From NCBI GenBank assembly GCA_965112155.1, contig OZ218105.1: a stretch of DNA of 64,000 nt; one strand, written 5' to 3'. Below the pieces are notes generated by a model. The model saw nothing but the letters and a program-made list of their open reading frames with translations. It was not told the origin of the DNA and made no database searches. The stretch comes from Podarcis liolepis. Lineage: Eukaryota. Positions 2,413 to 63,958 of this stretch are shown here, in pieces. Within the stretch, counting starts at the first letter, position 1; the number at the start of each line of letters is the position of its first letter. Both the position numbers and the translations under genes were made by a program.

Positions 2413-2532
2413 CTTGCAGGATCTCTACTTCTGAGCTACTCCTTCCATGGCTCTTCCTACCAGGAGAAAAGAAACAAATGTGGAGTCAGTTTTGCCTACA
2501 AAGCTCAACCATATTAAAGTGAGACACTCATA

Positions 2533-6550: not shown

Positions 6551-6738
6551 AAGCAGAAGTACCAAGAGATATAAGAAGAGATAGAAAATGAGGTGTTTTT
6601 TGGAGGAAAACTCAATCAGTTTTTTATTAAAGCCTTTGTGTTACAAAGCAAACAGATAAACATGGAAAGGTAACCTGTAGTCTCCACTTTTAGTTCATAG
6701 TCTTTTTCATGGGTTGATTTTTTTTTAAGTCATCAGAT

Positions 6739-7289: not shown

Positions 7290-7686
7290 CTCTCTCTCTC
7301 TGTGTGTGTGTGAGAGAGAGAGGGGGGGGGGAGGGAGAGAGAGAGCTACAGAATGCCTCCTTCCACCTGGTTTTTAGTTTTTTTCCATTTAATCATTCCA
7401 TATCCCATTCCAGTGAATTTTCTTTGGGTTGTTCTGGGGTTTTTATGCCCCTCTCAGCGCTACACAAAGCATGCCTCTTATGCAATGGTGGTATAGTTTT
7501 GGATACAGAAGCCCAAACATGGGAAGTATCAACTTGATATTGCTGCACATGAGACTTAGATATGTGATATAGTAGACTCTGTATGAGAATGGTCTACTGG
7601 GCACATGTTCATGACCGTTAAATGCCAGGACATTGTTATCTGCCACCAGCGCTATCTTGTTTGAACTTCTGCAGAAGATAGTTGGG

Positions 7687-11184: not shown

Positions 11185-12054
11185 TTATAGGGCGCACCTA
11201 GTTTTTAGGGGGGGGGGTTTCAAGGAAAAAAAAAACATTTAAAGGGAGTGCTGAGCAGAGCCTGTATGCATCCCAGGCTCTGCTCAGCGCTCCCTTTCAC
11301 AAGCCGCGTGGAGTGTGTCTGTGGCTCTTGGGGGCTTTTTCCCAAGGAGGGAGAAGGGCAGCCCTTCAGTGATTGGCTCTCCTCCTCCCTCCTCAGGGGA
11401 AAGCCCCCAAGAGCATCTCCAGAGGGCAGCGGGATGAAGGCTCGCTGCTGCCCTGTGGAGGCTTCGCGGGCTACCCCAGAGCTGCTCAGGAGCTTATCGG
11501 GGCTGGCGTGGAAAGCCCAGACTTCCCCCACCAGCCCCAACGAGCTCTGGGAGTATTCCCTACCTCCTGCAGAATCCGCACACTCTTTAAAGGGGCTGTG
11601 CGGCTTCTACTGGCTTTTCTACTGGCAGAAGCTGATCGCTCATTAAAGAGGCGGCACGGCTTTTACTGGCTTTCCCCCCACCTCTCGCAGAAGCCGCACA
11701 CTCTTTAAAGAGCGCACTGCTCTTGGGGGCTTTTCCCTGAGGAGGGAGAAGGGACTAACTGGCTGTGTCAGTCCCTTCTCCCACCTAATAGAAAAGCCCG
11801 CAGGAGCCGTGCGCTCTTTAAAGGGTGCGTGGCTCCTGGGGGCTTTCCTACAAGGTGGGAGAAGGGACTGATGAGGCCAGTCAGTCCCTTCTCCCTCCTG
11901 GGGAAAAGCCCGCAAGAGCCACACGGAGCTTGTGTGCGGCTCTTGGGGGCTTTTCCTGCCTGCCTCCCCCCTGCATTCACTCCATAAGACGCACACACAT
12001 TTCCCCTTGCTTTTTAGGAGGGAAAAAGTGTATCCTATGGAGCGAAAAATATGG
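11185..12054. mobile_element. Tc2/pogo-like MITE, left end truncated
   Basis: Right TIR CCTATGGAGCGAAAAATATGG followed by TA; palindromic internal subrepeats. Confidence 0.75.
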
Positions 12055-14086: not shown

Positions 14087-14224
14087 NNNNNNNNNNNNNN
14101 NNNNNNNNNNNNNNNNNNNNNNNNNNNNNNNNNNNNNNNNNNNNNNNNNNNNNNNNNNNNNNNNNNNNNNNNNNNNNNNNNNNNNNNNNNNNNNNNNNNN
14201 NNNNNNNNNNNNNNNNNNNNNNNN
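14087..14224. other. Assembly gap (N run)
   Basis: Ns at the position where paralogs carry (GT)n(GA)n. Confidence 0.99.
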
Positions 14225-14618: not shown

Positions 14619-15400
14619 CCGTATTTTTTGCTCCATAGGGCGCGCAGGACTATAGGGTGCACCTAGTTTTTAGGGGGGGGGGGTTTCAAGAAAAGAATAT
14701 ATTTAAAGGGAGTGCTGAGCAGAGCCAGGATGCATCCCAGGCTCTGCTCAGCGCTCCCTTTCACAAGCCGCGTGGAGTGTGTGTGTGGCTTTTGGGGGCT
14801 TTTTCCCGAGTAGGGAGAAGGGCAGCCCTTCAGTGATTGGCTCTCCTCCTCCCTCATCGGGGGAAAGCCCCCAAGAGCATCTCCGGAGGGCAGCGGGATG
14901 AAGGCTCGCTGCTGCCCTGTGGAGGCTTCGCGGGCTACCCCAGAGCTGCTCAGGAGCTTATCGGGGCTGGCGTGGAAAGCCCAGACTTCCCCCACCAGCC
15001 CCAACAACCTCTGGGAGTATTCCCAACCTCCCGCAGAATCCGCACACTCTTTAAAGAGCGCACCGCTCTTGGGGGCTTTTCCCTGAGGAGGGAGAAGGGA
15101 CTAACTGGCGGCGCCAGTCCCTTCTCCCACCTCATAGAAAAGCCCGCAGGAGCCGCGCGCTCTTTAAAGGGTGCGTGGCTCCTGGGGGCTTTCCTACAAG
15201 GTGGGAGAAGGGACTGATGAGGCCAGTCAGTCCCTTCTCCCTCCTGGGAAAAAGCCCGCAAGAGCCACACGGAGCTTGTGTGAGGCTCTTGGGGGCTTTT
15301 CCCGCCTGCCTCCCCCCTGCATTCGCTCCATAAGACGCACACACATTTTCCCTTGCTTTTTAGGAGGGAAAAAGTGTGTCCTATGGAGCGAAAAATACGG
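14619..15400. mobile_element. Tc2/pogo-like MITE, complete
   Basis: TA|CCGTATTTTTTGCTCCATAGG ... CCTATGGAGCGAAAAATACGG|TA; empty site in paralogs (e.g. ~70, ~7757, ~41072). Confidence 0.85.
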
Positions 15401-15594
15401 TATATATGCAATAATGATATGCAAAAGAATTCCAAAACATAATGGGGGTAATTAAAGTTCTGGACCTCAGACCAAATCCAGTTCTCAATCCTTGGGTTCA
15501 ATCCTTCTGCATCAGTCCAACAGCAAGTTAATTCCTCTCTTTTGAAACATCAGATTTACTTTCATTAATCGTGCACGCGCGCACACACACACTT

Positions 15595-21327: not shown

Positions 21328-22226
21328 CCGTATTTTTCACTCCATAGGGCACGCAGGACTATAGGGTGCACCTAGTTTTTAGGGGGGGGGGGTTCAAGAA
21401 AAAAAAATATTTAAACGGAGTGCTGAGCAGAGCCTGTATGCATCCCAGGCTCTGCTCAGCGCTCCCTTTCACAAGCCGCGTGGAGTGTGTCTGTGGCTCT
21501 TGGGGGCTTTTCCCCGAGGAGGGAGAAGGGCAGCCCTTCAGTGATTGACTCTCCTCCTCCCTCCTTGGGGGAAAGCCCCCAAGAGCATCTCCGGAGGGCA
21601 GCGGGATGAAGGCTCGCTGCTGCCCTGTGGAGGCTTCGTGGGCTACCCCAGAGCTGCTCAGGAGCTTATCGGGGCTGGCGTGGAAAGCCCAGACTTCCCC
21701 CACCAGCCCCAACAAGCTCTGGGAGTATTCCCCATCTCCCGCAGAATCCGCACACTCTTTAAAGGGGCTGCACGGCTTCTACTGGCTTTTCTACTGGCAG
21801 AAGCCGATCGCTCCTTAAAGGGGCTGCGCGGCTTCTACTGGCTTTCCCCCCACCTCCCACAGAAGCCGCACACTCTTTAAAGAGCGCACCGCTCTTGGGG
21901 GCTTTTCCCTGAGGAGGGAGAAGGGACTAACTGGCTGCGTCAGTCCCTTCTTCCAACTCATAGAAAAGCCCGCAGGAGCCGCACGCTCTTTAAAGGGCGC
22001 GTGGCTCCTGGGGGCCTTTCTACAAGGTGGGAGAAGGGACTGATGAGGCCAGTCAGTCCCTTCTCCCTCCTGGGGAAAAGCCCGCAAGAGCCACACGGAG
22101 CTTGTGTGAGGCTCTTGGGGGCTTTTCCCGCCTGCCTCCCCCCTGCATTCGCTCCATAAGACGCACACACATTTTCCCTTGCTTTTTAGGAGGGAAAAAG
22201 TGTGTCCTATGGAGCGAAAAATACGG
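21328..22226. mobile_element. Tc2/pogo-like MITE, complete
   Basis: CCGTATTT...AAATACGG TIRs with TA TSD; same host site as 14619-15400. Confidence 0.85.
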
Positions 22227-23669
22227 TATATATGCAATAATGATATGCAAAAGAATTCCAAAACATAATGGGGGTAATTAAAGTTCTGGGCCTCAGACCA
22301 AATCCAGTTCTGAATCCTTGGGTTCAATCCTTCTGCATCAGTCCAACAGCAAGTTAATTCCTCTCTTTTGAAACATCAGATTTACTTTCATTAATCGTGC
22401 ACACACACACACACACACACTTAGAGAGAGAGAGAGAGAGAAAGACAGACAGACAGACAGACAGACAGAGAGATACAGAGACTGCAGGAGCTGGGTTTGA
22501 AGACAGTAATCTTTCTCTGCCACCCATCAGGGCTTTGTGCCATTCTGATGATGAGTCTTACTTGCTCATGCTGATTTTCGGTTAACCTTTTATGTGAGCA
22601 GCTTGCACACTGTGGTGGGTCACTTAGGTTGTGCCAGTGAAAAGCTAATCAGCTTAAGAGGAACCCAATCATCTTCCCCCCTGCTCAGAGGTGACTCTTT
22701 GCTCTGCAATGCACAGTGGACTGCATGGTTTCACCTGACTGCTTTATTCTGATGCCCCATCCCAATCCTTCTTAATAAGTATTGACCAGAATGATGTGTC
22801 ATGGATGATGTCTCTATCCATAGCGATTTCAGTTCTTCACCATGCAGAGGAGTCTAGTGTAGCTTTGGATATAGGCTTGATGGCTAGCATTGAGTGGAAA
22901 GTGCATTGAGGCATGTTATGGAACCCCCCCTCCCAGTATGCTCTGGATTTCCCCCAAAGAACTTTTTGGGAAAGATAGTGAAGCATTGATGTCATGAATC
23001 ACTTCTGCTAATTGTCACATTGCCCTATAAAGTTGTAGATGGCAGAATTTTGTGGATTTCTATATCCACATAGTTACAATGTCTATATCACTACCTTCGT
23101 ATAATAAGCAGGGATATTTTTCAGCCAGAACTTTCCGGAACTCAATTCCGGCACCTCTCAGATGGGTGCCATTGAAATTGTAATAGAACAAAGGAGACCT
23201 TTATGGTGAGTTTCTGCACCTCTTTTTCTAGAAAAATAGCACAGAAAATAGGGGTTATACTGGTGGAATGTCCCATAATGCACTTTTTTCAAAAAATCTG
23301 GGGAAAATATTTTCTTCTGTTTTCTTCAAACATTTGGGCCCTACGTGTGAAGATTTCTTTACTTCATTCACTTTGGCAACAAATCTCTTTTCTATACCAT
23401 TTAGCAAGTAATCCCACTTGTCAAAGTCTGTTGAAGTGGCATTTCTTTTTATTTTATTTCTTTTTATTTCATTTTCTCAAACATGTAAAACACTTATCCT
23501 GCAAATTAGGGGAATCCAAGGGGCTTGTAATGATACTACTGAAACGAGGACAGAAATTAAGAGTAAATGAATCCAAAATAATTAAAAAATGGTGAGTACA
23601 GAGGAAAACAAGTACCAAGAAATACACCAAGAGATAGAAAATGAAGCTTTCCTAGCTAGTTTGAAGTCT

Positions 23670-26266: not shown

Positions 26267-26437
26267 NNNNNNNNNNNNNNNNNNNNNNNNNNNNNNNNNN
26301 NNNNNNNNNNNNNNNNNNNNNNNNNNNNNNNNNNNNNNNNNNNNNNNNNNNNNNNNNNNNNNNNNNNNNNNNNNNNNNNNNNNNNNNNNNNNNNNNNNNN
26401 NNNNNNNNNNNNNNNNNNNNNNNNNNNNNNNNNNNNN
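26267..26437. other. Assembly gap (N run)
   Basis: Ns at the microsatellite position of the duplicated unit. Confidence 0.99.
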
Positions 26438-33154: not shown

Positions 33155-34050
33155 CCGTATTTTTCGCTCCATAGGACACACTTTTTCCCTCCTAAAAAGC
33201 AAGGGAAAATGTGTGTGTGTCTTATGGAGTGAATTCAGGGGGGAGGCAGGTGGGAAAAGCCCCCAAGAGCCTCACACAAGCTCCGTGTGGCTCTTGCGGG
33301 CTTTTCCCCAGGAGGGAGAAGGGACTGACTGGCCTGATCAGTCCCTTCTCCCACCTTGTAGAAAGGCCCCCAGGAGCCACGCACCCTTTAAAGAGCGAGC
33401 GGCTCCTGCGGGCTTTTCTATGAGGTGGGAGAAGGGACTGACGCAGCCAGTTAGTCCCTTCTCCCTCCTCAGGGAAAAGCCCCCAAGAGCAGTGCGCTCT
33501 TTAAAGAGTGTGCGGCTTCTGCGGGAGGTGGGGGGAAAGCCAGTAGAAGCCGCGCAGCCCCTTTAAGGAGCGATCGGCTTCTGCCAGTAGAAAAGCCAGT
33601 AGAAGCCGCGCAGCCCCTTTAAAGAGTGTGCGGATTCTGCAGGAGGTTGGGAATACTCCCAGAGCTTGTTGGGGCTGATGGGGGAAGTCTGGGCTTTCCA
33701 CGCCAGCCCCGATAAGTTCCTGAGCAGCTCTGGGGTAGCCCGCGAAGCCTCCACAGGGCAGCAGCGAGCCTTCATCCCACTGCCCTGTGGAGATGCTCTT
33801 GGGGGCTTTCCCCCGAGGAGGGAGGAGGGCAGCCAATCACTGAAGGGCTTCCCTTCTCCCTCCTCGTAGAAAAGCCTGCAAGCGCCGCACACACACTCCA
33901 CGCGGCTTGCGAAAGGGAGCGCTGAGCAGAGCCTGGGATGCATACGGGCTCTGCTCAGTACTCCCTTTAAATATATTCTTTTCTTGAACCCCCCCCTAAA
34001 AACTAGGTGCGCCCTATAGTCCTGCGCGCCCTATGGAGCAAAAAATATGG
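33155..34050. mobile_element. Tc2/pogo-like MITE, complete (inverted paralog)
   Basis: TA|CCGTATTTTTCGCTCCATAGG ... CCTATGGAGCAAAAAATATGG|TA. Confidence 0.85.
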
Positions 34051-39663: not shown

Positions 39664-41334
39664 AGAAATACTTCAAGATAGCTGAGAAAGCCTCATTTTC
39701 TATCTCTTCTTTCTATCTATTTCTTGGTACTTGTTTTCCCCTGTCCTCACTATTTTATTATTTTGAATTCATTTACTCTGTTAATTTTTGTCCTTGTTTT
39801 AGCAGTATCGTTAAAAGCCCCTTGGATTGCCCATTTGGCAGGATTAATGCTTTGTATGTTTTAGAAAATTAAATAAAAAAGAAATGCCACTTCAACAGAC
39901 TTTGAGTTGAGAAGGATGACTTGCTAAATGGTATAGAAAACAGACTCATTGCCAAAGGGAATGAAGTAAAGAAATCTTCACATGTAGAGATTGAATGTTT
40001 GAAGAAAACAGAAGAAAGTATTTTCCCCAGGTTTTTTAAAAAGTGCATGATAGTTAATTCCACCAGTACAATCCCTATTTTCTGTGCTATTTTTCTAGAA
40101 AAAGAATGCAGAAATTCACCATGAAGGCCTCCCTTGTTCTCTTATAACAGCCATGGCACCCATCTGAGGGGTGTGGGACTTGAGCTCTGGTGAATTGTGG
40201 CTGAAAAAAAAGCCATGTTTATATCGATGTAGTGATATAGAAATTATAACTATGTGCATATAGAAATCTACACCTTTATAGGGCAATGTGACAATTAGCA
40301 GAAGTGATTCATGACATCAATGCTTCTCCAACTTTCCAATAATTTTTTGGGGAAAAAACACCAGAGCATACCGGGGGGGAGATGGCTCCATATCATGCCA
40401 CAATGCACTTTCCACTCAATGCTAGCCGTCAAGCCTATATATTCAAACATGCACTAGACTCTTTTGCATGGTGAAGAACTGAAATCACCATGTATAAAGA
40501 CTCACCTTGACACATCATTCTCGTTAACACTTATTAAGAATGATTAGGATGGGGCATGAGAATAAAGCCGTCAGGTGAAACCATGCAGTCCACTCTGCAC
40601 TGCAGATCAAAGAGTCCCCTTTGAGCAGGGGAGAAGATGACTGGGCTCCTCTTATGCTGATTAGCTTTTCACTGGCACAAGCTAAGAGACCCACCACAAT
40701 GTGCAAAGGCTCTAATGCAATTGAGAGGAAGCAAGATGCTCACATAAAAGGCTAACCAAAAATCAGCTTGAGCAAGTAACACTCATCATCAAAATGGCAC
40801 AAAGCACCTGATGGGTGTCAGAGAAAGATTACTGCCTTCCAACCCAGCTCCTACAGTCTGTGCGTGTGTGTGTGTGTGTGTCTGCGCGCGCGCGCGCGTG
40901 ATTAATGAAAGTACCGTAAATCTAATTATTCAAAAGAGAGGAATTAACTTGCTGTTGGACTGAAGCAGAAGGACTGAACCCAAGGATTGAGAATTGGATG
41001 TGGTCTGAGGTCCAGAACTTTAATTACCCCCATAATGTTTTGGAATTCTTTTGCATATCATTATTGTATATATAGTTATTTTCCCCCATAATATAAGTTT
41101 TGGGTTAGATGCTTTTGTAACTTGTCTCCTCTCACAGGAAACACCCAAATATCTTCTGCAGAAGTTCAAGCAAGATAGTTCTGGTGGCAGATAACAATGT
41201 TCTGGCATTTAACGGTCATGAACATGTGCCCAGTAGACCATTGCGTGTTGAGTCCCACAAAGCCACCCTCACCAATAACTCACACTTCACACGTTAATTT
41301 TGTTTAAGGTTTTTGGCATGATTTTGGCCACAAC

Positions 41335-41340
41335 TTTATT
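41335..41340 (-). terminator. Poly(A) signal of the YR retrotransposon
   Basis: AATAAA in TTTTAATAAAGTTGTGGCCAA, 92 nt from the element 3' end. Confidence 0.6.
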
Positions 41341-41352
41341 AAAATACATATA

Positions 41353-41693
41353 CGTGAGTGGTTGCTTAGGCATTGGTTAAGACTATCTGTCCTTGCCCAG
41401 GGACAGGGCTGGCCTTCCGGATTCCAGCGGAAGCCAGCCTGGGAAACAAGTATTGGGTGAGAAGGTGAGGCTGGGTAACAGTCCCACACCTCTCACCCTC
41501 ATGTTCCTGTGGGGCTTGCACGGCCCAGGTCCGACTCCGGGGACAAGGACGAAAGAATGGCAAGCCCCTGGATTCCTTTAACGGAATTCCCTTTCCGCCA
41601 CCATTGGAGGGGTAGGCACTTACCCCTCCCAACCAATTTTAAACCAATGCCTAACCGCCAATGGAGCCTTAGCTCGCCGCCAAACCACTCACG
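41353..41693 (-). ncRNA. Putative structured cis-acting RNA in the 3' UTR of the YR element
   Basis: Long-range inverted repeats 41353-41363/41683-41693 and 41366-41378/41642-41654 enclose several hairpins; motifs shared with 55806-56162. Confidence 0.55.
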
Positions 41694-42263
41694 AACTCAG
41701 CCAAGACCTTAGCTTAGCCACCACAGCACCCAACCACGCCTTATTCCCTAAGGCCGAAAGATGCACCCCATCATCCCTGAATAGAGATTCCTCCCTAGGC
41801 AGAATCTCAGGATGGGAAATCACGTCACCTCCCAACTCGAAAACTTTTTCCGAGACCGCTGAATTGATCCGCTTCCTAGCCCTCTCAGTGGCAGTTGGGC
41901 AACGACTGCCTCTCCAACTGCGCCTTTGCAAAAACTTTGACCAGAAAATTTTTGTTGCCGGCACCATTGCCCGCAGCACTTCAAGATCTCCCAGGATAGC
42001 AGCACGTAACGAAGCACAGTCCATAGAAACCAGGTCGTTCTCACCCAACTGCACCACAATGGCCGTGGGCGGCCCTTCCTCTGCCAGCTGCCTACGAATC
42101 AGTGGCAGAAACTCAGTCCAGGACATCCCCCTTCTGGCCAGCCAAGATACGCGCACGTGAGGAGGAAGGCCGAGACCCGGTCCCAATCTGAGCTGCCTGG
42201 CTCCAACAGCGGCCCAATGTACGATACTGTGCCCCACCATCCATATGCGTACGGCTGCTAAAC
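41689..42263 (-). CDS. SGNH/GDSL hydrolase (esterase) ORF of the YR retrotransposon
   Basis: IWMVGHS (block I), RGMSW (block II), QLGENDL (block III), DGVH (block V); ATG at 42240, with the frame open back to a splice acceptor at 42264. Confidence 0.85.
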
Positions 42264-42296
42264 CTGGTATAGAGAAACAAAATATAAAACATCATG

Positions 42297-43220
42297 TTAG
42301 CGAACATAGCCTCTAAACGCGTTCGACTTCCAACGACCCAAGTTCTTTATCCTGCCCGCAGACAGGCCCCAATGTGCTGCCATCGTGGCAGCCCCGATCC
42401 TGAAAGAATGTGGGGCAAAATCACTAGCAGAAGCACCACAAGCCGCAATGGCCTTCCGCATCACCCTTGCAAACTGTCGCCTAGACAGAGGCGACCCATC
42501 TTCGTGCTGCAATAATGGACCTTCTCCCGGAGCCCGGAGGGACAAGTACCTCCTGACATCTTTGACCGGACACGGACCCACCTCCCTTGCGGCCGGTAAA
42601 CGAATGAGGGCTCCCCTTCCACCCTGATCCGTTTTAGAATTCCTGATGAGGAGTCTTAGCTCATCTGGAGATAGCTGTGCATCCTGAAACAATAACCCCC
42701 TGGAACGACCATTATTGTGCTCCTCCCATACGAGCTCACCAACCCTTAGTGCTCCGAAGAAGGCAATAGAAAAGGCCGCAGAAAAAAGGCGAGCCTCATA
42801 CCTAGACCAGCAAACGCTCCTCAGCTCTTTGCGCATCTTGCACAGCAAATCATATGATATAGGGTGCCTAGTAGCTGGCTGGGAAGGACAAAGCCTACCC
42901 CATCCCTCAAGAGCCTTACGTACGGAAAACTTAGCGCAAGGATCCTTGTCAAAATAAGCTTTGCAGAAAAAGGCAATGGCAGCTGCCTGAATTCTTAGCG
43001 TCTTCGCTGCACGTCCTAACTGAAACAGGTGCGCCAAATATCTTAGCACCTGAGAAGTCAAGGGGGAAGCCCCCCTTTGCTCCCCGGCCGACTGATATGT
43101 AAAGGACAAAAAATCAGCCCATGCTTTGGTGTATGACCTGAGTGTAGAAGGAGAAATAGAAGCCATTACTCCCTGAAACACTAGCTCCTGCCAAGGCTCC
43201 AGAGATGATCCGGGAAACAT
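42297..43220 (-). CDS. Tyrosine recombinase
   Basis: FFGALRVGEL (R), SKTDQ (K), HSFRIGAAT (HxxR), GRWKS...GYVR (W, Y nucleophile). Confidence 0.95.
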   Translation of the reverse strand: MFPGSSLEPWQELVFQGVMASISPSTLRSYTKAWADFLSFTYQSAGEQRGASPLTSQVLRYLAHLFQLGRAAKTLRIQAAAIAFFCKAYFDKDPCAKFSVRKALEGWGRLCPSQPATRHPISYDLLCKMRKELRSVCWSRYEARLFSAAFSIAFFGALRVGELVWEEHNNGRSRGLLFQDAQLSPDELRLLIRNSKTDQGGRGALIRLPAAREVGPCPVKDVRRYLSLRAPGEGPLLQHEDGSPLSRRQFARVMRKAIAACGASASDFAPHSFRIGAATMAAHWGLSAGRIKNLGRWKSNAFRGYVR

Positions 43221-45193
43221 TCCGGACGTTTCCGAGCCTCTGGAACCAGAAGTCTGAACCGCTCCATCTGAAAACGGGACAGAGCATCAGCAATTTCGTT
43301 AGACACCCCCGGAACAAAACGTGCGGAAAAGACTATATTATAGCGTAAACAATGTAAAACAAAAGCCCGTAAGAGGGCCGACACCCTAGGAGAGCGGGAG
43401 GACAGCTTGGCCAACACGTTTACCACCGCCTGGTTATCAGTCCAGAAGCAGACTCGTCGGTCCCTGAACTCTTCGACCCACAAGTGCACTGCCACTGCAA
43501 TGGGAAAGAACTCAAGAAAAGTTAGGTCCCGAGTAATGGCTGTTCCCTGCCAATCAAGAGGCCAGCGCTTGGCACACCACCTACCCATCCAATATAGACC
43601 AAAACCTTGGGATCCTGCAGCATCTGAATGCACCTGAAAATCGTTCTGCAAGTTCAGAGTATCTTGCCATAACGATACCCCATTAAAATCCTCCAAAAAT
43701 TCCAGCCATATGCTGAGATCAGCCCTCACCTCCCTGGAAAGACGAACACGATGATGCGGGGCCTTCAAGCCCACCGTGAGGCGAGCCAATCGAGAGCAAA
43801 AGGGGCGGCCAGGGGCCACCACCCTACAGGCAAAATTCAGGTGACCTAACAGCGACTGGATCTGCAGTAGGGACACCTTCTTTAAGGGAAGCAATTCCTC
43901 TATAACATTTTTCAAAGCCACCAGCTTATCCTTTGGCAAGCTAGAGGTTTGAGACACCGTATCCAAAAGGATGCCCAAATACGTAAGCTGAGTCGAGGGG
44001 CCCTCAGTCTTTTCAGCCGCCAATGGGACCCCTAGCTCCTCAGTAAGGGCAGCTAAAGCACGCAACAGAACCGAGCAATTGTCAGTATTACACTCAGAAG
44101 CCAATAAAAAATCATCCAAATAATGAGTAACCCCTTCCAACCCGGTTTTCAGCTTGAGGGCCCATTCCAAAAAGGTGCTAAAAGATTCAAAAGCAGCGCA
44201 CGCTATAGAGCAGCCCATGGGCATGGCCTTGTCAAAATAGTATTTTCCCTCAAACTGGAAACCGAGCAGCCAGAAATCCTCCGGATGAATCGGGAGCAAG
44301 CGGAATGCCGACTCAATGTCGCATTTTGCCAATAACGCAGCTGGTCCAAACTTCCGGATCATCTTGATCGCGTGATCAAGAGAGGCATACCTAACTGAGC
44401 AAAGTTCTGGAGGAATCACATCATTAACTGAAGTACCCCTAGGGTGAGATAAATTATGAATCAAACGGAATTCACCAGGGGCCTTCTTTGGCACGATGCC
44501 CAGTGGGGAAACATGCAAATTAGTAAATGGAGGGGCACAAAAGGGGCCAGCCATCCGATGCATAGCCACCTCTTTCGTCATCTTCCTTCGGGCAATCTCT
44601 GGCAATTCACGAACTGATTTCTGATTAGACGAATTCCGAGCCACGGGAGGCTTGGCTACCGGAATCCGAAAACCAACTGAAAAACCGTCGCTCAGGTAAC
44701 GAGCGGCCTCCCTATCCGGGTAAAACCTGAGCCACTCTTTTAGGGCCGGCAGACGAATAGGAGTCTGGGCCAGTGAAGTCAGCACCTCATTTTGCTGTTC
44801 CTGAGGTTGAGGGTGTGGGGGGGGCTGCCTTGGGGGGTTGTTGAGAGCCCCCTTTTCCCCCACGAAAGGGCCGCCGCCCACCAAAACAAGAGGAAGCCGG
44901 ATGCAATCCATTGCACTTCTCACAAGTGTGCGCAAATCTACAAGTTGAACGCTGACAGGAAGTCCTGTTAAAATCCCAACACGGCAATCGACGGCCAGGT
45001 CTGAAGGCAGAGACACCCTGTTTCTGCTGCTCCGGTACCTTTTTGTCAATGAGTGGGGCAACATGAGTAGTCCACACATCGAGATCTTTCCGATCCCAGC
45101 GTGCAGACGGAATCTTGGCCGCACGACGCCTAAAGTTCTCATCATATTTGATTGCGGCTTTATCGCCAGCCTTGGTAAAGGCAGAGCGTACAA
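43181..45193 (-). CDS. Reverse transcriptase-RNase H (DIRS type); true start uncertain, overlaps gag
   Basis: FRLIHNLS, KCDIESAF, MPMG, HYLDDFL, YLGI; RNase H SDAA, FLEFFPI, TDNQAVV, NEIADALSR; no methyltransferase tail seen. Confidence 0.95.
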   Translation of the reverse strand: MYALPLPRLAIKPQSNMMRTLGVVRPRFRLHAGIGKISMCGLLMLPHSLTKRYRSSRNRVSLPSDLAVDCRVGILTGLPVSVQLVDLRTLVRSAMDCIRLPLVLVGGGPFVGEKGALNNPPRQPPPHPQPQEQQNEVLTSLAQTPIRLPALKEWLRFYPDREAARYLSDGFSVGFRIPVAKPPVARNSSNQKSVRELPEIARRKMTKEVAMHRMAGPFCAPPFTNLHVSPLGIVPKKAPGEFRLIHNLSHPRGTSVNDVIPPELCSVRYASLDHAIKMIRKFGPAALLAKCDIESAFRLLPIHPEDFWLLGFQFEGKYYFDKAMPMGCSIACAAFESFSTFLEWALKLKTGLEGVTHYLDDFLLASECNTDNCSVLLRALAALTEELGVPLAAEKTEGPSTQLTYLGILLDTVSQTSSLPKDKLVALKNVIEELLPLKKVSLLQIQSLLGHLNFACRVVAPGRPFCSRLARLTVGLKAPHHRVRLSREVRADLSIWLEFLEDFNGVSLWQDTLNLQNDFQVHSDAAGSQGFGLYWMGRWCAKRWPLDWQGTAITRDLTFLEFFPIAVAVHLWVEEFRDRRVCFWTDNQAVVNVLAKLSSRSPRVSALLRAFVLHCLRYNIVFSARFVPGVSNEIADALSRFQMERFRLLVPEARKRPECFPDHLWSLGRS

Positions 45194-46313
45194 TCGACAG
45201 ATAAACTAACAAATGAAGGGACCTACGTGGATAAGCTGCCATGACTATACCGGCGAAGACCTGAAAACAGTCAAGCCAGTGTTCGAAGGTCCTGCCCGCC
45301 GCAGAAACCCCTGAGCGCTTTTTAGTAGAAGCGCTTCCTTTTTCCTGCTCTTCAGAAGGCGGGGCTAACTTGAAAATGTCTACATAGCGTCCATTTAAAA
45401 TCCTGGCCCGCCATTTCGATGACAAGTGTGAGCCTGGGATAATATCCCTGGCCGAATTGGTTGAGACTTTAATGTCGGGAACCAACACACCATCCCTGCA
45501 TTCTTGAACAGCTCCATACTTTGCCCGATGAGCGTTGGACCTGCGCTCCCAAGCCCACCTAGGAAGCCCCGAAGCCGATTCACCAAAACCCCAATAAAGT
45601 TCCAAGTGAGTACCCTCATCGTCGGAGCTAGAGGAAGACGTACCCGAAGTGGAGGAAGTGGAGTCATCCTTCCTGCGCTTTGCACGTTTCCGAGACGCCC
45701 TCTTGTGGCGACGCTTCCCTCCCAAGGACTTCCTGGCGGGGACCGGGAGACTGTCTTCGACAGAGGATTCCGAATCAGGGTGCTGCTGAGACGGAACTGA
45801 AACAGACTGCATAGAGACAACATGTGAGATACCAGAACCGGATGCCACAACCGGTAGAGAGCGAGCAGGTGTGCGCCGGCGAGTGGACGCAGCCAACGGT
45901 GCGCTCCTTCCCGAGGCCCGCCTGGAAAGGCGGCCTGACCGCCGAGGCCAGTTCTGTATTACAGGTAAGCCAGGAGACTGGGATAACTGTGGATTCCTAA
46001 TTAAACCCTGTGGTGACGATCCTTCTCCCTCATCCTCGCTAGATGACGATGAAGCCGGAGGCGGCACCACTGCTGAAGAGGGCGGGCCCCCAGACGTGGA
46101 CGGTTGAGAAGAACGATGTTGCAGGAAAAGGTCCAAATCAGCTGCGAAGCGAGATAGAGCCGCAGGGTCACCTGCCATGCCTGCCACCAACGATTGCACT
46201 CGCCCCACCGGTTGATTGGTGGGGGGAGAGCGGAGCACTTGGGATGGACCTCTGATAGGCCGTTTTGACGTGATGGCAGAGCTGGAGCGCGTAGCAGCTT
46301 TCTTTGGAGCCAT
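44787..46313 (-). CDS. Gag-like ORF1 of the YR retrotransposon
   Basis: Ser/Arg-rich N-terminal half with a basic NLS-like stretch; YDENFRR; C-terminal CWDFN...C...C.FAHTCEKC..LH...C zinc finger typical of DIRS/Ngaro Gag. Confidence 0.88.
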   Translation of the reverse strand: MAPKKAATRSSSAITSKRPIRGPSQVLRSPPTNQPVGRVQSLVAGMAGDPAALSRFAADLDLFLQHRSSQPSTSGGPPSSAVVPPPASSSSSEDEGEGSSPQGLIRNPQLSQSPGLPVIQNWPRRSGRLSRRASGRSAPLAASTRRRTPARSLPVVASGSGISHVVSMQSVSVPSQQHPDSESSVEDSLPVPARKSLGGKRRHKRASRKRAKRRKDDSTSSTSGTSSSSSDDEGTHLELYWGFGESASGLPRWAWERRSNAHRAKYGAVQECRDGVLVPDIKVSTNSARDIIPGSHLSSKWRARILNGRYVDIFKLAPPSEEQEKGSASTKKRSGVSAAGRTFEHWLDCFQVFAGIVMAAYPRRSLHLLVYLSIVRSAFTKAGDKAAIKYDENFRRRAAKIPSARWDRKDLDVWTTHVAPLIDKKVPEQQKQGVSAFRPGRRLPCWDFNRTSCQRSTCRFAHTCEKCNGLHPASSCFGGRRPFRGGKGGSQQPPKAAPPTPSTSGTAK

Positions 46314-46729
46314 ACCTGCTAGCAGGAGATAAAATCAAAACCAGTTAAATTACCGATCGCAACAGCAAAATAAGGCTAGCAACCTCCAGACAATAAGCCC
46401 TGCTGGGCCTTCCACCAGCTGTTACTAGATCACCTCAAATGAATTCTAGGCCGCAGCTCGGAAAAGACTGTCTCTTGGCCAAGGCAATAGCCAGGTGTAT
46501 TCGTCTCTTACAGTATCTATCTATCTATCTATCTATCTATCGGAAAATAAAACAAAGATGCAGTCGTAAGCACTGATGCCAGCCCAAGAGGCCCCAGCAG
46601 GCCCAAACGCAAATAAATTACCACCAAGCAGCAGTAATATTACTTGCCCAGTCACTTATTTAGCGGCAGTGTGATAAATTAGCAGCCAGCAGGGGCAGGG
46701 GTAGGGGGGGTGGGGGGTGAGGCCCAGTC

Positions 46730-47270
46730 CCTCACAAAACAATTGAGGCGCAGTACCTCTCAGAGCCACTAGGGGGAGCCTCCGTCGGCAAGACGATGCC
46801 CCAAAATGGCGGAGCCAACCAGAATGACTCGGCAATAGTAGCTAGGCCGCGAGCGCGCCCAGGGCCGCGGCGCTGACGCGACGGGCCTGTATTTGCCCCC
46901 CCCGCACGCCCACGCGAGGCGGGCGGGCCCGCTGGCTCAAGAATGGGGCCCGCTGAAATCACCCCGGCGGGGCGCTCCCCCGCCGCCGCCGCCGCGCGGC
47001 CGCCGGACACAGCCCCGGAGAACGGGGCGTCGCCGACGCGGCAGCGACCTCGGCGAATTGGGCCTGGATCCCGCCGCCCGCCGCGACCCCAGGTAGGCCC
47101 GAGTGCACAGGAGCCGCAATGAGGGCGGGGGGGGGGGTCTAAGGCGCTCCGCTACGGAGCTATGGATGGGAGAAGGGCGGGCCGCGGCCCTGCGAGGGCA
47201 CGGGCGCTTCCCCCGGCGCACGGGAGGAGGCCTCCCCTGGACTGGGGGGGGCACCCCCGCTCCCACTAAA
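46730..47270. promoter_or_regulatory. CpG-rich 5' region of the YR element
   Basis: Very high GC content and undecayed CpGs compared with the AT-rich host. Confidence 0.5.
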
Positions 47271-47519
47271 CTGCAATTAAATTAACTAAAGAAGCCAAAT
47301 TAAATTAACTAATAAATAAACAAAAGGACAGATCTAGACGAAAGAGGAGGAAGGGAAAAAACGGGAAGGAAATAATAAAGGGAGAGGAACAGAAGGCAAT
47401 AAGGCCCAAAGAAAATCAACGTCCAATAAACAATTCTTTATACTCAGCAACCGGCTCCAGACAATCTGCTCCGTGATCCGATGCAGAGGCCAAGAGGACT
47501 TCCCCACGTGAGTAACCTG

Positions 47520-47527
47520 TATTTATA
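47520..47527 (-). promoter_or_regulatory. Putative internal TATA box (TATAAATA) of the YR element
   Basis: ~160 bp inside the 5' terminus, same strand as the ORFs. Confidence 0.5.
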
Positions 47528-48369
47528 GCCTCTGTCCTTCTCTCTCAATTGGAAACATGCTAAACTCCCCAGCAACCCAATTAACCCTTTAAGGGATTCT
47601 ACTTTGTCCAAACCTGCCTGGTAACAGCAGGGTGGCTTGTATTCTCCCACCCGCAACCCATGCTCTCTTTTGATGGAGAACACGCTTTCCCATACAGAGT
47701 CTTCTATATCACATATCTAAGTCTCATGTGCAGCAATATCAAGCTGATACTTCCCATGTTTGGGCTCCTGTACCCAAAACTATAGCACCATTGCATAAGA
47801 TACATGCTTTGTGTAGCACTGAGAGGGGCATAAAACCCCCAGAACAACCCGAAGAAAATTCATTGGAATGGGATATGGAATGACTAAATGGAAAAAAACT
47901 AAGAACCAGGTGGAAGGGGGCATGATGTATGTTGGTCTCTCTCTTTCACACAAACACACACAGAGAGAGAGAAAGAGAGAGAGAGAGACCATCTCTTGGT
48001 CTGGCTAGATTGTAGCCTTTTTTCCTTGTCCCCAGGATGGAATGAAGAGTATTCCCAAAAAATAGAGGCTTTAAAGAATTGAGGCATGTGGGATTGGGCT
48101 GAAGTATGTTGAAGACCCAGCAAAAAAAGCATATCGGCCTCCCACACATTTCAAAGTTTTCCCAACAGGATTGAAAAATCAAATAGATTAAGGCCTGCCA
48201 GCAGATCATCATGAGGAGGATAGTCCTGTTGTGTTCAGAATGAGAAATGGTGGTCAGTTTTGCATCTACGCTGCAGCAAGAAGAAAAAAGAGGAACTAGT
48301 GGCAGAACGAACAGCACAGTCAGATGCACTTTGCCCATGCTTGAAATCCTAAGTAACACAAAATGTATA

Positions 48370-53693: not shown

Positions 53694-53835
53694 NNNNNNN
53701 NNNNNNNNNNNNNNNNNNNNNNNNNNNNNNNNNNNNNNNNNNNNNNNNNNNNNNNNNNNNNNNNNNNNNNNNNNNNNNNNNNNNNNNNNNNNNNNNNNNN
53801 NNNNNNNNNNNNNNNNNNNNNNNNNNNNNNNNNNN
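53694..53835. other. Assembly gap (N run)
   Basis: Ns at a microsatellite-bearing position of the unit. Confidence 0.99.
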
Positions 53836-54620: not shown

Positions 54621-55449
54621 ATAGCTCTGTTTAGAGTAGGTAATGTCTTGATAATATAATGTTTTAAGTTTTTTTGAATTAATCCAGCATATTTCCTTTT
54701 AATTGTTGAATGATTCTGTGTACATTGCGGCAGCCTTTGGCTATGTGCAATAAAACTGACTGACTCAGGTATGTGAATGTTTCAAGTTGGTGAAGTTCAT
54801 TTGCAAGAGCAAGAGGGGGACCATAATTGGGTGGCAGAGGTGAACGTGCAGGAGGACTACTCTTGAAGCGAAACCAGTTTCTTTGTGACATAAATGGTCC
54901 TGTTGTTCTTCTTCATTATATGCATTCTGTGATTAGAGAGCATGGAAGAGAGCAAATTGGGGTATAATAAACTGTAGGTTAAAATAATGTGTATTTTTTT
55001 TCCATATGTCAGTAGCTGACTGGATTGTTTGTCTGTGTATTTAATATGTGGATTTAGGAACAGACCAAGATGTGTAATTCCAAGTCGGACTTTCTGATCC
55101 CCTTGGTCAGCACTGTCTGCTGTAAAGGGGGGGGGGAGCATTCTCAATGATCCTATAGGATCTCAAGGAGAGGATCTCCAGGATTTCCCCTCCCTTGGTC
55201 CCTTGAACTAGAGTCACCACAGCTTAAATTTTGGCACCTCTGCATGTAACATATGTATTATAATCCCCAAACTATAGTCCCTCTCCAGAACCACTTCTTA
55301 TTATAGCTGCACAGACTGTGATTTTCATTTTTTTAAAAAAGTGATGAAAAAGAGAATTTAAATTGGACCAATAAGAACAATGACCGCTCCCCACATCAAA
55401 TGGGGGGTGCCTTTTGCCTGGTTGCACACAGCCCCCCCCCCAGATCCCA

Positions 55450-56245
55450 GTGTGGACCCTGGTAGTTTGGGCTGGCTTCATCCTCCCCAGGTTGGATATC
55501 TGGAGGTCTCTGCCTACCTCAGCCAATTGCCCAATCCCGCCTGGGGAGGCGTTACAAGGAGTTCGGCCAGGTAAGGGGAGGGACCACCCTGCCCACACAA
55601 CAGAAGGTGAATCCTACCTGCGAAGTGTCAGTTGATTCCAGAGCTTCTCCCACCCTGCCCTCCCTCCGTTAAGTCTTCTTTTGCAGGTTAACCTCTTCTG
55701 CACAGGTATGCAGGCGCTGCTATGTCTTGGTCACTGTTGAAGGGCCGGAAAGGAATTTTCCAGCATTGGCAGGTTTTGCCTTTCCAGTAGCAAAACATCA
55801 AAACTTTGGCAGTTTCAGGCCTTGGGCGGGATCCTTTAGTCTATCTTCCTAAATGGGGTGTGTGTGTGAAGTGGTGACCCACGCCCCCCTTGCGGCGGTC
55901 AGCCCAGGGTTCACTGTTAAAGGGGTCTTGAGGGGAGGCATTGGCGAAACACCAAGAGGTTGTCATTGCTGTCCCCTCCAACGGCGGCGAAACAGGGGCG
56001 GGCTCTCTGCTTGAACATATGTTCTCCAGAGCCAGCACAATCCCCACACATTCTGGGTAACCCTGATGTCTTCCAGATCCCCGGCTGCGGATTCGGAAGG
56101 ATAAACGCCCAGTGCCTGAGCCAAGGTCTCCCTACACCTGAAATTTAATAAAGTTGTGGCCAATTGCAATCCCATAGCACGTTGTTTTGAGTCATTATTC
56201 CGCTCAGGGGTTGCCTGGGGTTGGGGGGACTCTGCCTGTCCACGC
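55450..56245 (+). mobile_element. Putative non-autonomous relative of the YR retrotransposon (non-coding; 5' end uncertain)
   Basis: Shares TTTAATAAAGTTGTGGCCAA, CCCCTCCAAYGGYGGCG, the paired AGGC/GCCT arms and the CACGC|AA terminus with 41243-41693; candidate TIR GTGTGGAC/GTCCACGC. Confidence 0.6.
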
Positions 56246-56901
56246 AAAAGTTACATACACTTTTTAACACTGCTGCTGTTGTTTTCCCAATATATTGCCT
56301 TGTTTTTGCCTCATTATCCTTTGAGTTACTCCACCATAAGTACCAAGCCCCATAAGTGCCAATCATAGGTACGAAACTCAGAACCAAGAAATCAAAGGAA
56401 GTCTTTAGATTCACAACTGAGATTCTTCTTGGTGTCCTATCTGTTATCAGATTTCTGTTTCACACTTAACAGCTAAGTTCTGATTGTATCAGAATAGGAA
56501 ATAGTGGTTAGTTTTGCAACTAGGTTGCAGCAAGAAGACAAAAGAGGAACTAGTGGCCGAATGAACAGCACACTTAGATGCTCTTTGCCCATGCTTGAAA
56601 TCCAAAGAAACACAAAATGTATACTTGGAACATAGAGGCAAATGTCCAGGGTTTTGGCAGGAACAATAGGTGAGTATTTCAAGTAATCAGTTCCCTGTTT
56701 CTTCTCTGTCACTTTGCAAAATCCTATTGAGCTCAATGAGCATTGGATTAATTGGAGGGTCCCCTCTCCATTTGTGTCTTTCCCCCCAACTATTTATTTG
56801 ATATATCTGTTGTGAAAAATCAATAATGGCCATATCTGCCCAATTCAAACTACGCAAATTTTCAAATGTCTCCATTAATGTCTATGGCTGACCATCTAAC
56901 A

Positions 56902-57037
56902 CAGTGGTGGCCAAACTTGGTCCTCCAGCTGTTTTGGGACTACAACTCCCATCATCCCTAGCTAACAGGACCAGTGGTCAGGAATGATGGGGATTTTAGT
57001 CCCAAAACAGCTGGAGGACCAAGTTTGGCCACCACTG
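56902..57037. mobile_element. hAT-type palindromic MITE, 136 bp
   Basis: CAGTGGTGGCCAAACTTGG ... CCAAGTTTGGCCACCACTG; 8-bp TSD ATCTAACA/CTCTAACA (7/8 match); empty site at ~48705 and ~62750. Confidence 0.85.
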
Positions 57038-58538
57038 CTCTAACATCTCACGGGGCATATAAAAACAGGTTCTCAGGGCTCCTCCACACCTCATTTAGCC
57101 TTCCATTTCCCGTCCAGGAAAACCCTCTCTGTACTGCTGAATCGAAACAAATGACCATTGGGTTTTCTGCAGATTGCTGTTCATTCCAATTCAGAGTCAA
57201 AGAGTGTGTTTTTCAACGGAAAGCTGCACTGCAAAGGCAAGGTCACTTGGACCAGTGCCTGGAAGGTCCCCGGAGAAGGCTTGAAACTGTGTCTTTTTGG
57301 AATGGGACTGGTGGATGGGTGGATGAACCCTCAATTTGAACAAGGAAAATGACCTAGCCAGAACATGCCATGTTATTTACTGTACATAGATCTTTACATA
57401 CATATGTGTGTGTGTGCCATCTCATCCAACCATTCCATCATGTTCTCCTCTCCTACCTGGTTAACCATTGTCCACCTCTTAGTCATTCAAAAGCCCCCCC
57501 CCCCCCATGATTTCCAGGTTCCATAGTTACGCCTGTGGGGCTCCATACACACCATGAATTCAAAGCATATCATCCCCCCCAAAGAATCTCAAGCACTGTA
57601 GTTTTGACCCTCACCCAGTTCCTCCCTGCAATTTATTTTCTCACTTATCTCAAGAATGCTATTCTATGACATCAAGACTTTGGAGGCAAGAACCTCCTGT
57701 GTAATCAGCTCTCTTGACAACCAATGAACAAAATTCTTCTTGCCACAGGATGTTGGCAAATTGCTTAAGAACAGATGAAGAGTAATGGGTGGAGCCCTAA
57801 ACATCTTGGGGAGAGCTTGGTGATACATCTATTTTCTCCTCCTTGGGTCTGTAGTCAATTCTGCCAATCTTCTGACTACCTCTTCATTCCAGCACATGAT
57901 TTTGTGTTTCTTGCTGCCTCCAACTCACCTTGTCTTTAGACGGCTAATCAACAGTTGCTCACAGGTATGTGAATGTCTCAAGTTGACATGGTTCATTTGC
58001 AAAAGTGGGAGAGGAACCAAAGGCAGAAGTGTACATGCATTTAAGGCAGAAAAGCCCAAGTTGAATCCCTGAAGAAGGAATACTGGGATGGAGAAACCAA
58101 TAACCTGCCTCACAAGTGCTCTACAGTAGGAATACAACAGTTTACTGGTGGTGGCAATTGTCCTTCTTATGATAGGAAATGCTATGTGAGAGTCAAAGAA
58201 TCGGGATTGAGGGGGATCAATAGGAGAGGAGTTTAAAATGACCCTATTTTCATCTGAGGAATGTTTGGGGATATGTCAATGTATCTGGGATTGAACAGAA
58301 GTGTCCCCAATGCCCTGTAAAACAACAACAACAGGTTGCTCTTCAGAGTTGCCTGAAGTGGGTTGTGAAATTAAAGAGCTGATGGGCCAGCAGAAAACCA
58401 CAGGTGTGGAGATGACTGTTGTGTTCTGAAGCTGTTTGTAGGCTTCCCTTAAGGATCTGTTTGGCCATTGGGAGACCAGGACAGTGGATTTCAGTTGAGT
58501 TTTATTTATTCTGGTTTTGTTAAATATCACATTTTAAT

Positions 58539-62378: not shown

Positions 62379-63245
62379 CTCACAAGCAAGAAGACAAAAG
62401 AGGAACTAGTGGCAGAATGAACAGCACTGTTAGATGCACTTTGCCCATGCTTGAAATCCAAAGAAATACAAAATGTATACTTGGAACATAGAGGCAAATG
62501 TCTAGGGTTTTGTCTGGAACAATAGGCGAGTATTTCAAGTAATCAGTTCCCTGTTTCTTCTCTGCCATTTCCCAAAATCCTATTGACCACAATGAGTAAT
62601 GGATTAATTTGGAGGGTCCCCTCTCCATTTGTGTATTTTCCCCAGCTATTTAATTAACATATTTATTGTGAAAATAGATAATGGCCATATCTGCCCAATT
62701 CAAACTATACAAATTTTCAAATGTTTCCATTCATGTCTATGGCTGACCCTCTAACATCCACTGGGATATACAAAAACAGGTTCTCAGGGCTCTGCCACAC
62801 CTCATTTGGCCTTCCATTTCCCACTAGGAAAACCCTCTCTTTACTGCTGAATCGAAACAAATGACCATTGGGTTTTTCCGCAGATTTTTGTTCATTCCAA
62901 TTCAGAGGCCAAGAGTGTGTTTTTCGGGGGAAACTTTTTGGAATGGGACTGGTGGAAGGTGGACAAGCCCTCAATCTGAACAAGGAAAATGATCTAACCA
63001 GAATGTGCCATGTTATTTACTCTACATAGATCTTTACATATATATGTGTTTCTGACATCTTATCCAACCATTCCATTCTGTTCTCCTGTCCCACCTGTTT
63101 CTCCATTTTCCCTCTCTTACAGAAGCCCGCCCAGCACCTTTCCATGTTCCATAGTTACACCTGTGGGCCTCCACACACACCATGCATTCAAAGCATATCA
63201 TTCCACTCAAAGAATCCCAAGCACTGTAGTTTTTCCCCTCACCAG

Positions 63246-63958
63246 TCTGTGGCTCTTGGGGGCTTTTCCCCGAGGAGGGAGAAGGGCAGCCCTTCAGTGA
63301 TTGGCTGCCCTCCTCCCTCCTTGGGGGAAAGCCCCCAAGAGCATCTCCGGAGGGCAGCAGGATGAAGGCTTGCTGCTGCCCTGTGGAGGCTTCGCGGGCT
63401 ACCCCAGAGCTGCTCAGGAGCTTATCGGGGCTGGCGTGGATATAGAAGCGCTGGGAGTATTCCCAACCTCCCGCAGAATCCGCACACTCTTTAAAGGGGC
63501 TGCGCGGCTTCTACTGGCTTTTCTACTGGCAGAAGCCGATCGCTCATTAAAGAGGCGGCACGGCTTTTACTGGCTTTTTCCCCACCTCCCACAGAAGCCG
63601 CACACTCTTTAAAGAGCGCACCGCTCTTGGGGGCTTTTCCCTGAGGAGGGAGAAGGGACTAACTGGCTGCGTCAGTCCCTTCTCCCACCTCATAGAAAAG
63701 CCTGCAGGAGCCGCACGCTCTTTAAAGGGCGCATGGCTCCTGGGGGCTTTTCTACAAGGTGGGAGAAGGGACTGATGAGGCCAGTCAGTCCCCTCTCCCT
63801 CCTGGGGAAAAGCCCGCAAGAGCCACCCTGAGCTTGTGTGCGGCTCTTGGGGGCTTTTCCCGCCTGCCTCCCCCCTGCATTCACTCCATAAGATGCACAC
63901 ACATTTTCCCTTGCTTTTTAGGAGGGAAAAAGTGTGTCCTATGGAGCGAAAAATACGG
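63246..63958. mobile_element. Tc2/pogo-like MITE, left end truncated
   Basis: Right TIR CCTATGGAGCGAAAAATACGG|TA; same family and host flank as 11185-12054. Confidence 0.8.

Follow-up and report, generated by a model that had tools for sequence, protein, structure and literature searches.

A folded 3' untranslated domain in a Ngaro-type retrotransposon of Podarcis liolepis, a candidate template handle that recurs in gene-less elements

A 64,000-nucleotide (nt) stretch of the Podarcis liolepis genome (GenBank assembly GCA_965112155.1, contig OZ218105.1; hereafter the window) contains an intact 6,444-bp tyrosine recombinase (YR) retrotransposon, which we call E1. Open reading frames (ORFs), Pfam matches and empty insertion sites place it at 41243..47686 on the minus strand. 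We show that the 3' untranslated region (UTR) of E1 holds a strongly folded domain, 41353-41693, situated between the TGA stop codon of its SGNH esterase gene (41691-41689) and the AATAAA signal, all on the minus strand. The architecture of this domain recurs in diverged form in a gene-less element, E2, and its parts are over-represented relative to the adjoining coding sequence in contigs from other organisms. We infer that it acts as RNA, and we give roughly an even chance to a specific role: the domain would be a cis-acting 3' handle that marks RNA templates and is common to a Ngaro-type element and its non-autonomous relatives.

Two perfect long-range helices, P1 (11 bp) and P2 (13 bp), clamp approximately 270 nt of hairpins, and the 3' arm of P1 ends 12 nt ahead of AAUAAA. 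The closing arms form a duplex of -36.1 kcal/mol that none of 1000 shuffles matched. A closed multi-hairpin RNA between the SGNH stop and the poly(A) signal, with the stop codon inside its outer stem, had been proposed from an inspection of the letters (the sequence-only reading), and these points are confirmed by our analysis: both closing stems lie where they had been placed, with Watson-Crick pairs throughout, and the stop falls in the 5' arm of P1. The proposal was worded in plus-strand letters, which must be corrected: E1 is a minus-strand element, and its RNA has the reverse-complement sequence. The hairpins at 41407-41439, 41455-41498, 41606-41629 and 41664-41675 were recovered, and another was found at 41387-41406. 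A further hairpin, placed at about 41570-41590, exists as a plus-strand reading, but in the sense RNA a competing hairpin at 41579-41600 is predicted instead, with a pair probability of 0.51. The helix pair probabilities given here and in Table 1 are means from folding 807 nt of transcript context.

The fold is unusually stable. The sense (minus) strand has a minimum free energy (MFE) of -162.5 kcal/mol (z -6.31) and the plus strand one of -159.8 kcal/mol (z -6.37), with 0 of 100 dinucleotide shuffles as stable in either case; the shuffle check suggested alongside the sequence-only reading thus favours the fold on both strands. In a coarse 341-nt fold scan over the whole window, the domain ranks 9 of 183, and the eight places above it are taken by long palindromic repeats from another family. 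The fold of the domain is unusual, but in this repeat-rich DNA strong folding is by itself no rarity. CCAAT/ATTGG occurs 6 times in 407 nt (41294-41700), compared with a mean of 0.8 in shuffles and a window average of 2.4 per kb. Some of these copies are found in arms complementary to each other and might pair in alternative ways, for example 41668-41657 with 41610-41598.

Two crossing pairings had also been described, as a pseudoknot or as two alternative folds. Both pairings exist in the sequence. The long-range duplex 41540-41550 / 41389-41398 is worth -20.5 kcal/mol, compared to -11.4 and -9.1 kcal/mol for the two local hairpins it replaces, and forcing it in a nested alternative, in which P5 is lost, costs 2.7 kcal/mol. 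In these calculations the crossing helix is plausible as a near-isoenergetic alternative fold; a pseudoknot brings no energetic gain and finds no comparative evidence.

The start of the domain is tied to the protein that precedes it. All 13 SGNH homologues compared, down to 39% identity, terminate at the same residue (...WLGL-stop), and the stop codon that opens P1 is thus positionally conserved. A search of these homologues for C-terminal read-through into the UTR found none; every one stops at the same codon. The GHS, GxND and DxxH blocks of the esterase are invariant in an alignment of 14 homologues. Its identity to seven annotated Podarcis proteins is 74-82%, to an eighth 45%, and to a newt protein 42%.

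E2, a gene-less element of ~0.8 kb at 55450..56245 on the plus strand, provides the closest comparison; its ends are presumed, with no empty site to confirm them. The 3' regions of E1 and E2 align by nhmmer (E 7e-7) at an identity of only ~50%, and both carry the motif CCCCTCCAAYGGYGGCGRAA and an identical 17-mer, AATAAAGTTGTGGCCAA, that includes AATAAA. The closing stem of E2 is built of different letters (UCAGGCCUUGGGCG/CGCCCAGUGCCUGA plus CUUUGGC/GCCAAGG). Relative to P2 of E1, three pairs are altered on both sides with pairing kept (U-A to C-G, U-A to G-C and U-A to C-G), and the remaining differences are one mismatch and one U.G pair. In E2, the 3'-arm segment has an upstream partner with which it would pair at -35.4 kcal/mol; 2 of 1000 shuffles did as well. 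The layout is also maintained: the domain measures 341 nt in E1 and 325 nt in E2, and the element runs on past AATAAA for 92 nt (E1) or 93 nt (E2), though the sequence between has diverged. In E1 the domain itself lies 110 nt from the 3' end. The presumed termini of E2, GTGTGGAC / GTCCACGC, resemble the GCGTGTT / AACACGC termini of E1. E2 folds to -134.2 kcal/mol in sense, with 13 G.U pairs, and to -120.8 kcal/mol in antisense, with 5; this advantage of 13 kcal/mol is in the direction expected if the structure matters in RNA. An attempt to align E1 and E2 with MAFFT and RNAalifold gave a structurally wrong alignment at ~50% identity, and its counts of "compensatory" changes were discarded.

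Related repeats show which parts of the region are most widely kept. Contigs from four runs, from four other organisms, were matched to 41150-41850 (701 nt) at a likeness of at least 80%. Between 58 and 2,214 contigs match per run, and the region is therefore part of a large and diverse repeat population. Taken as orders of magnitude and together with contig counts, summed depth is 100-1000 times that of the SGNH coding part in two segments, Blocks A and B, which are also present in many more distinct contigs. For example, 85-104 distinct contigs carry a listed variant at 41320, compared to 4-7 at 41693. Block A, the most heavily covered and most conserved segment, includes AATAAA, the 17-mer and the 3' arm of each closing helix (P1 and P2). 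Clusters of loose contig ends lie at 41298, 41389/41398, 41547/41557 and 41595, and in a few contigs Block A is joined straight to Block B. This modular coverage is found in all four runs. The population thus has two conserved blocks in common and is variable between them.

Variants listed in the same contigs can be set against the fold. Thirteen of the 24 listed domain variants fall at unpaired positions, which make up 121 of 341 (35%; binomial P 0.047); those at 41422, 41423 and 41427 lie in the loop of hairpin e. The other 11 fall at paired positions; pairing survives in 6 of them on the sense RNA, through C-G becoming U.G or G.U becoming A-U, and in 2 on the antisense. In most other copies, both members of the terminal pair of P1 are altered (C>T at 41353 in 72-87%, G>A at 41693 in 75-89%); since these data are unlinked and both sites are CpG, we take the apparent double change as no more than suggestive. 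In sense letters, C>U plus A>G exceed G>A plus U>C by ~2:1 in all four runs, an excess that fits selection for changes that wobble pairing tolerates.

Table 1. Coordinates of the 3' domain, its host element E1, the related element E2 and other repeats of the window. P, mean pair probability; depth, summed contig depth.
Feature	Position	Strand	Details
P1 5' arm CGUGAGUGGUU	41683..41693	minus	11 Watson-Crick pairs; P 0.96; holds SGNH stop UGA 41691-41689
P1 3' arm AACCACUCACG	41353..41363	minus	pairs with 41683-41693
P2 5' arm UUAGGCAUUGGUU	41642..41654	minus	13 Watson-Crick pairs; P 0.95
P2 3' arm AACCAAUGCCUAA	41366..41378	minus	pairs with 41642-41654
Hairpin a	41664..41675	minus	4 bp; in 28-nt bulge between P1 and P2; P 0.88
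Hairpin b	41606..41629	minus	9 bp, GGAGGGGUA/UACCCCUCC; P 0.91
Conserved motif CCCCTCCAAYGGYGGCGRAA after hairpin b	41612-41593	minus	
Hairpin c	41579..41600	minus	8 bp with two G.U pairs; sense RNA; P 0.51
P5 helix	41568-41560 / 41519-41511	minus	9 bp; P 0.97; encloses small hairpin 41523-41550
Hairpin d	41455..41498	minus	10+5+3 bp; P 0.93
Hairpin e	41407..41439	minus	7+5 bp; P 0.95, 0.84
Hairpin f	41387..41406	minus	6 bp; P 0.90; 3' half is arm of alternative helix with 41540-41550
AATAAA	41340-41335	minus	
E1 17-mer AATAAAGTTGTGGCCAA	41340-41324	minus	
E1 3' tail after domain	41243..41352	minus	last ~55 nt subfamily-specific; depth falls ~16-fold at ~41294-41298
SGNH coding part	41702-41850		depth X4 17-150; X13 240-1,430
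Most of domain			depth X4 2,000-8,000
Block B	41558..41605	minus	depth X4 22,000-55,000; hairpin c and P5 5' arm
Block A	41294..41389	minus	depth X4 37,000-173,000; X13 up to 1.4 million
E1 gag-like ORF	46313-44787	minus	ORF call
E1 reverse transcriptase/RNase H	45193-43181	minus	Pfam RVT_1 E 4e-13; YLDD legible in ORF
E1 tyrosine recombinase	43220-42297	minus	Phage_integrase E 9e-5, Phage_int_SAM_4 E 3e-3, both under Pfam's own cut-off; HxxR and C-terminal Y legible
E1 SGNH esterase, 183 aa	42240-41689	minus	Lipase_GDSL_2 match
Empty sites of E1's host repeat	near 14450, 28346, 34219, 7588, 19858		uninterrupted ...gaccatt|ctcatacag...
E2 closing stems	55804-55828 / 56108-56128	plus	two-part
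E2 copy of motif CCCCTCCAAYGGYGGCGRAA	55973-55992	plus	
E2 17-mer AATAAAGTTGTGGCCAA	56147-56163	plus	identical to E1 17-mer
Nested-long-palindrome repeat, five copies	~11345-12030, 14755-15440, 21575-22260, 33169-33850, 63177-63860	both orientations	~96% identical

E1 sits inside another repeat, of which at least five uninterrupted copies lie within the window; because five copies of this host repeat are empty, the ends of E1 (41243 and 47686) are exact. TT flanks the insertion on either side. The sense termini are 5' AGCGTGTT ... AACACGC 3', with a 7-bp terminal inverted repeat (GCGTGTT / AACACGC), and a circularised E1 would hold the palindrome AACACGC-TT(T)-GCGTGTT, which resembles a minimal tyrosine-recombinase site. 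Like Ngaro-like elements, E1 combines reverse transcriptase (RT)/RNase H with a tyrosine recombinase, has a gag-like ORF first and lacks a methyltransferase domain, and, as in the tetrapod members, an SGNH hydrolase ORF comes after the recombinase. Split direct repeats (SDRs) of the form A1...B1-A2-B2 were absent from E1 in a self-BLAST at word size 7, no direct 10-mers are common to its 3' 470 nt and 5' 2.1 kb, and internal copies of its termini of at least 9 nt do not exceed chance level. Truncation does not account for the missing SDRs, since the ends of E1 are exact. The long inverted terminal repeats and internal complementary region (ICR) of DIRS-like elements were likewise not found in E1, where the only inverted matches are the 7-bp terminal repeat and one 10-mer. 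Judged by the content of its genes, E1 is best described as Ngaro-type, short of proven membership, with one defining feature, the SDRs, lacking. At ~47440-47460 on the minus strand, ~230 nt in from the 5' end of E1, there is a TATA-like box, GGCTATAAATACAGG, with a G+C-rich leader (46300-47300) after it; transcripts that began at this box would miss the 5' terminus.

Ngaro-like elements with an SGNH hydrolase ORF have been described (Goodwin and Poulter, 2004; summarised in PMC9210276), and a hydrolase that follows the recombinase is the gene order of the amphibian Ngaro-like elements (PMC9210276). E1 shares the order gag, RT/RNase H, YR, SGNH hydrolase, and the lack of a methyltransferase, with the amphibian elements DIRS-53_XT and DIRS-54_XT. 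Unlike amphibian Ngaro-like elements, E1 has no detectable SDRs and has instead 7-bp terminal inverted repeats and TT junctions; DIRS-54_XT likewise lacks conserved terminal repeats (PMC9210276). No description of a structured 3' RNA in SGNH-bearing Ngaro-like elements, or of such a structured 3' domain in YR retrotransposons generally, was found in the literature searched.

Searches for a known RNA family returned nothing. The Rfam search recommended with the sequence-only reading gave no match at gathering score in the whole window, R2_retro_el and the self-cleaving ribozymes included. Permissive searches of 40000-43000 and 55300-56400 gave two chance-level hits only (E ~0.4-0.6), with best scores of 18.6 bits for SCARNA21, which needs 60, and 14.4 bits for Plant_SRP, which needs 105. 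No tRNA-like gene or head was found, nor were bacterial-type promoters or terminators, which are not relevant here. Exact-pattern scans for conserved motifs gave zero hits in genome contigs and viral contigs and 6 in metagenome contigs, all attributable to chance and with no upstream similarity. Viral contigs searched with the SGNH alignment and the YR protein held no related loci, and literature on the 17-mer, and squamate literature on short interspersed elements (SINEs) consulted for the motifs, yielded no match. A phmmer search of 1.8 billion representatives for translated homologues of a spurious 88-aa ORF in the UTR had a sole hit, P0018, which we rejected. P0018 is a predicted 3,021-aa protein with 15 tandem repeats of ~125 aa, and its E-value of 1e-24 is not meaningful because weak matches to identical tandem repeats were summed.

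How might such a domain work? In the template-handle reading, it would mark the transcript, in cis, as a template for E1's own machinery: Gag and RT may recognise or package the RNA through it, and reverse transcription may start there. Because the module would act in cis on any RNA that carries it, gene-less derivatives could be copied in trans, and E2 and the very abundant repeats of related lizards would be such passengers of the E1 machinery. We favour this reading because an autonomous and a gene-less element have a 3' domain in common whose stems are rebuilt in different letters, and because the best-kept blocks adjoin the poly(A) signal, the pattern expected of a cis module that non-autonomous derivatives need. 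The start of reverse transcription in elements of the DIRS order is unexplained and no primer has been identified, though a 3' hairpin has been suggested as the primer for DIRS-1 (PMC7192593). The sequence-only reading had offered a cis-acting RNA for RT recognition, priming or packaging, or else a ribozyme. The former stands to the extent that this is a structured non-coding domain of an RT-encoding element that recurs in E2 and in repeat contigs; the ribozyme is not borne out.

Several observations weigh against the template-handle reading. The helices of E1 are nearly pure Watson-Crick and both strands are equally foldable, which leaves room for a role at the level of DNA or cDNA. The whole-domain fold of E2 is weak (z -2.5), although a modest score is expected of an old copy. 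The full-length comparison consists of two sequences, E1 and E2, which is too few for a true test of covariation. Depth summed over contigs measures poorly and cannot rank parts of a gene, and the variants are unlinked and come from a list of 40 out of 114. Positions 41353 and 41693 are both CpG sites and so perhaps decayed independently, and biased mutation or editing would account equally well for the excess of C>U and A>G. Finally, no run containing the stretch is recorded as RNA, and the one guessed to be RNA spans only the repeat-like part.

Some of these points invite the view that the fold has no function of its own and is a by-product of a mosaic 3' region, generated by repeat recombination, in which inverted segments pair by chance. 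Coverage falls into modules that are sharply bounded at 41389/41398, 41547/41557 and 41595, there are deletion joints between blocks, other repeats in the window fold still more strongly, and the comparative evidence is thin. We nonetheless find this account doubtful, given that E1 and E2, though diverged, hold differently lettered closing stems at the same positions in domains of the same size. Moreover, P1 pairs a Ngaro-specific stop-codon sequence with the abundant Block A, unlike a random mosaic. A role of the structured RNA in export, stability or 3'-end processing is unlikely. An element of this kind, which would help the unspliced full-length transcript out of the nucleus or aid its processing in the manner of a constitutive transport element, would suit a strong fold located between the last stop codon and AAUAAA, and would be kept by gene-less derivatives that likewise need expression. 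On the other hand, no Rfam family matches and no internal two-fold repeated loop motif is seen, and the continuation of the 17-mer past AATAAA into GTTGTGGCCAA points to something beyond a poly(A) signal.

If the fold acted in DNA, the closing stems or else short palindromes of the single-stranded cDNA would offer duplex sites at which strand transfer, the priming of the second strand or the recombinase could work, in place of SDRs or an ICR. The absence of both from E1, the almost exclusively Watson-Crick helices and the palindrome that the circularised termini would form are consistent with this idea, as is the folding of the plus (cDNA) strand as single-stranded DNA with z -6.7; DIRS-1 produces single-stranded cDNA intermediates (PMC7192593). 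However, the G.U pairs in the closing stems of E2 would be A.C mismatches in cDNA, E2 folds 13 kcal/mol worse in antisense, and single variants keep pairing three times as often on the sense RNA, so we regard a role in DNA as very unlikely. A combined version is more of a long shot still: a lizard YR lineage may have dropped its SDRs and come to use the folded 3' domain as a device for both replication and integration. The same module would then be the RT template handle in RNA, and its cDNA fold would self-prime or close a circle, bringing the short terminal inverted repeats together for the tyrosine recombinase, in the way that folded single-stranded attC or CTX-phage sites serve the tyrosine recombinases of bacteria. 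Were this device real, the handle would let the element drive a SINE-like family of huge size, and the DIRS order would gain its first example of such a partnership. A self-cleaving ribozyme or viroid-like circular RNA module, by comparison, is scarcely credible. The closed, branched shape alone recalls one, and no hammerhead, HDV-like, twister or other family reached threshold in the permissive searches of 40000-43000 and 55300-56400 or at gathering score in the whole window.

Comparison with better-known systems places the template-handle reading in context. The nearest known functional counterparts, by analogy and with neither a sequence nor an Rfam match, are the 3' UTR of R2 and the common tails of pairs of long interspersed elements (LINEs) and SINEs. 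Work from the Eickbush laboratory is said to show that the R2 3' UTR, a few hundred nt long, keeps its fold while its sequence drifts and is recognised by the element's own protein for the start of reverse transcription. Both R2 and E1 thus have structured 3' UTRs, but R2 is a target-primed, endonuclease-based non-LTR element, and there is no match to Rfam R2_retro_el. In the eel, UnaL2 and UnaSINE1 are a LINE and a SINE in partnership via a common 3' tail. As in LINE/SINE pairs, an autonomous element and far more numerous gene-less elements carry a conserved 3' module in the case of E1 and E2. Unlike those pairs, the presumed partner E1 encodes a tyrosine recombinase, E2 has terminal inverted repeats like those of E1 and no tRNA-like head, and mobilisation in trans is conjectural.

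Other systems are more distant. DIRS-1 is comparable in that it, too, is a YR retrotransposon with a non-coding cis element close to its 3' end (PMC7192593), but the DIRS-1 ICR is complementary to both termini, whereas the E1 domain matches the E1 termini over at least 9 nt only by one 9-mer at chance level. The constitutive transport element of simple retroviruses is a structured RNA that follows the last ORF and precedes the poly(A) signal. The E1 domain shows no similarity to it, is much larger and branched, and has no internal symmetric loops that we could see. Retron msr-msd and hepadnaviral epsilon resemble the E1 domain as structured RNAs beside an RT gene, a likeness that we would treat as analogy only; the E1 domain differs from them in that it lacks the context for a 2'-OH branch, a protein-priming bulge motif and any Rfam match.

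Some further features of the window deserve mention. If AATAAA is used in E1 or E2, the RNA would miss the last ~70 nt of the element, and no repeat is present to restore them. Just downstream of E2, at ~56900-57038, lies a near-perfect hairpin of ~75 bp (GTGGTGGCCAAACTTGGTCCTCCAGCTGTTTTGGGACTA...) that resembles a miniature inverted-repeat transposable element, and its stem opens with a 3-mismatch match to the 17-mer. The nested-palindrome repeats listed in Table 1 are much more strongly folded than the E1 domain, with energies ~55-110 kcal/mol lower than those of shuffled sequence over the stretches scanned, and by BLAST they are unrelated to the Ngaro 3' region. Runs of N occupy 14087-14224, 26267-26437 and 53694-53835.

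Should the fold turn out to be a by-product, what is left is a precise, if ordinary, annotation of an intact Ngaro-type element. Beyond that, the E1 domain offers a concrete candidate, open to testing, for the cis element still missing from accounts of template choice, or of the start of reverse transcription, in YR retrotransposons. Provided that Blocks A and B do indicate the sequences on which the machinery depends, they would also explain how very abundant non-coding repeats in lacertid genomes could be kept going by a rare autonomous element.

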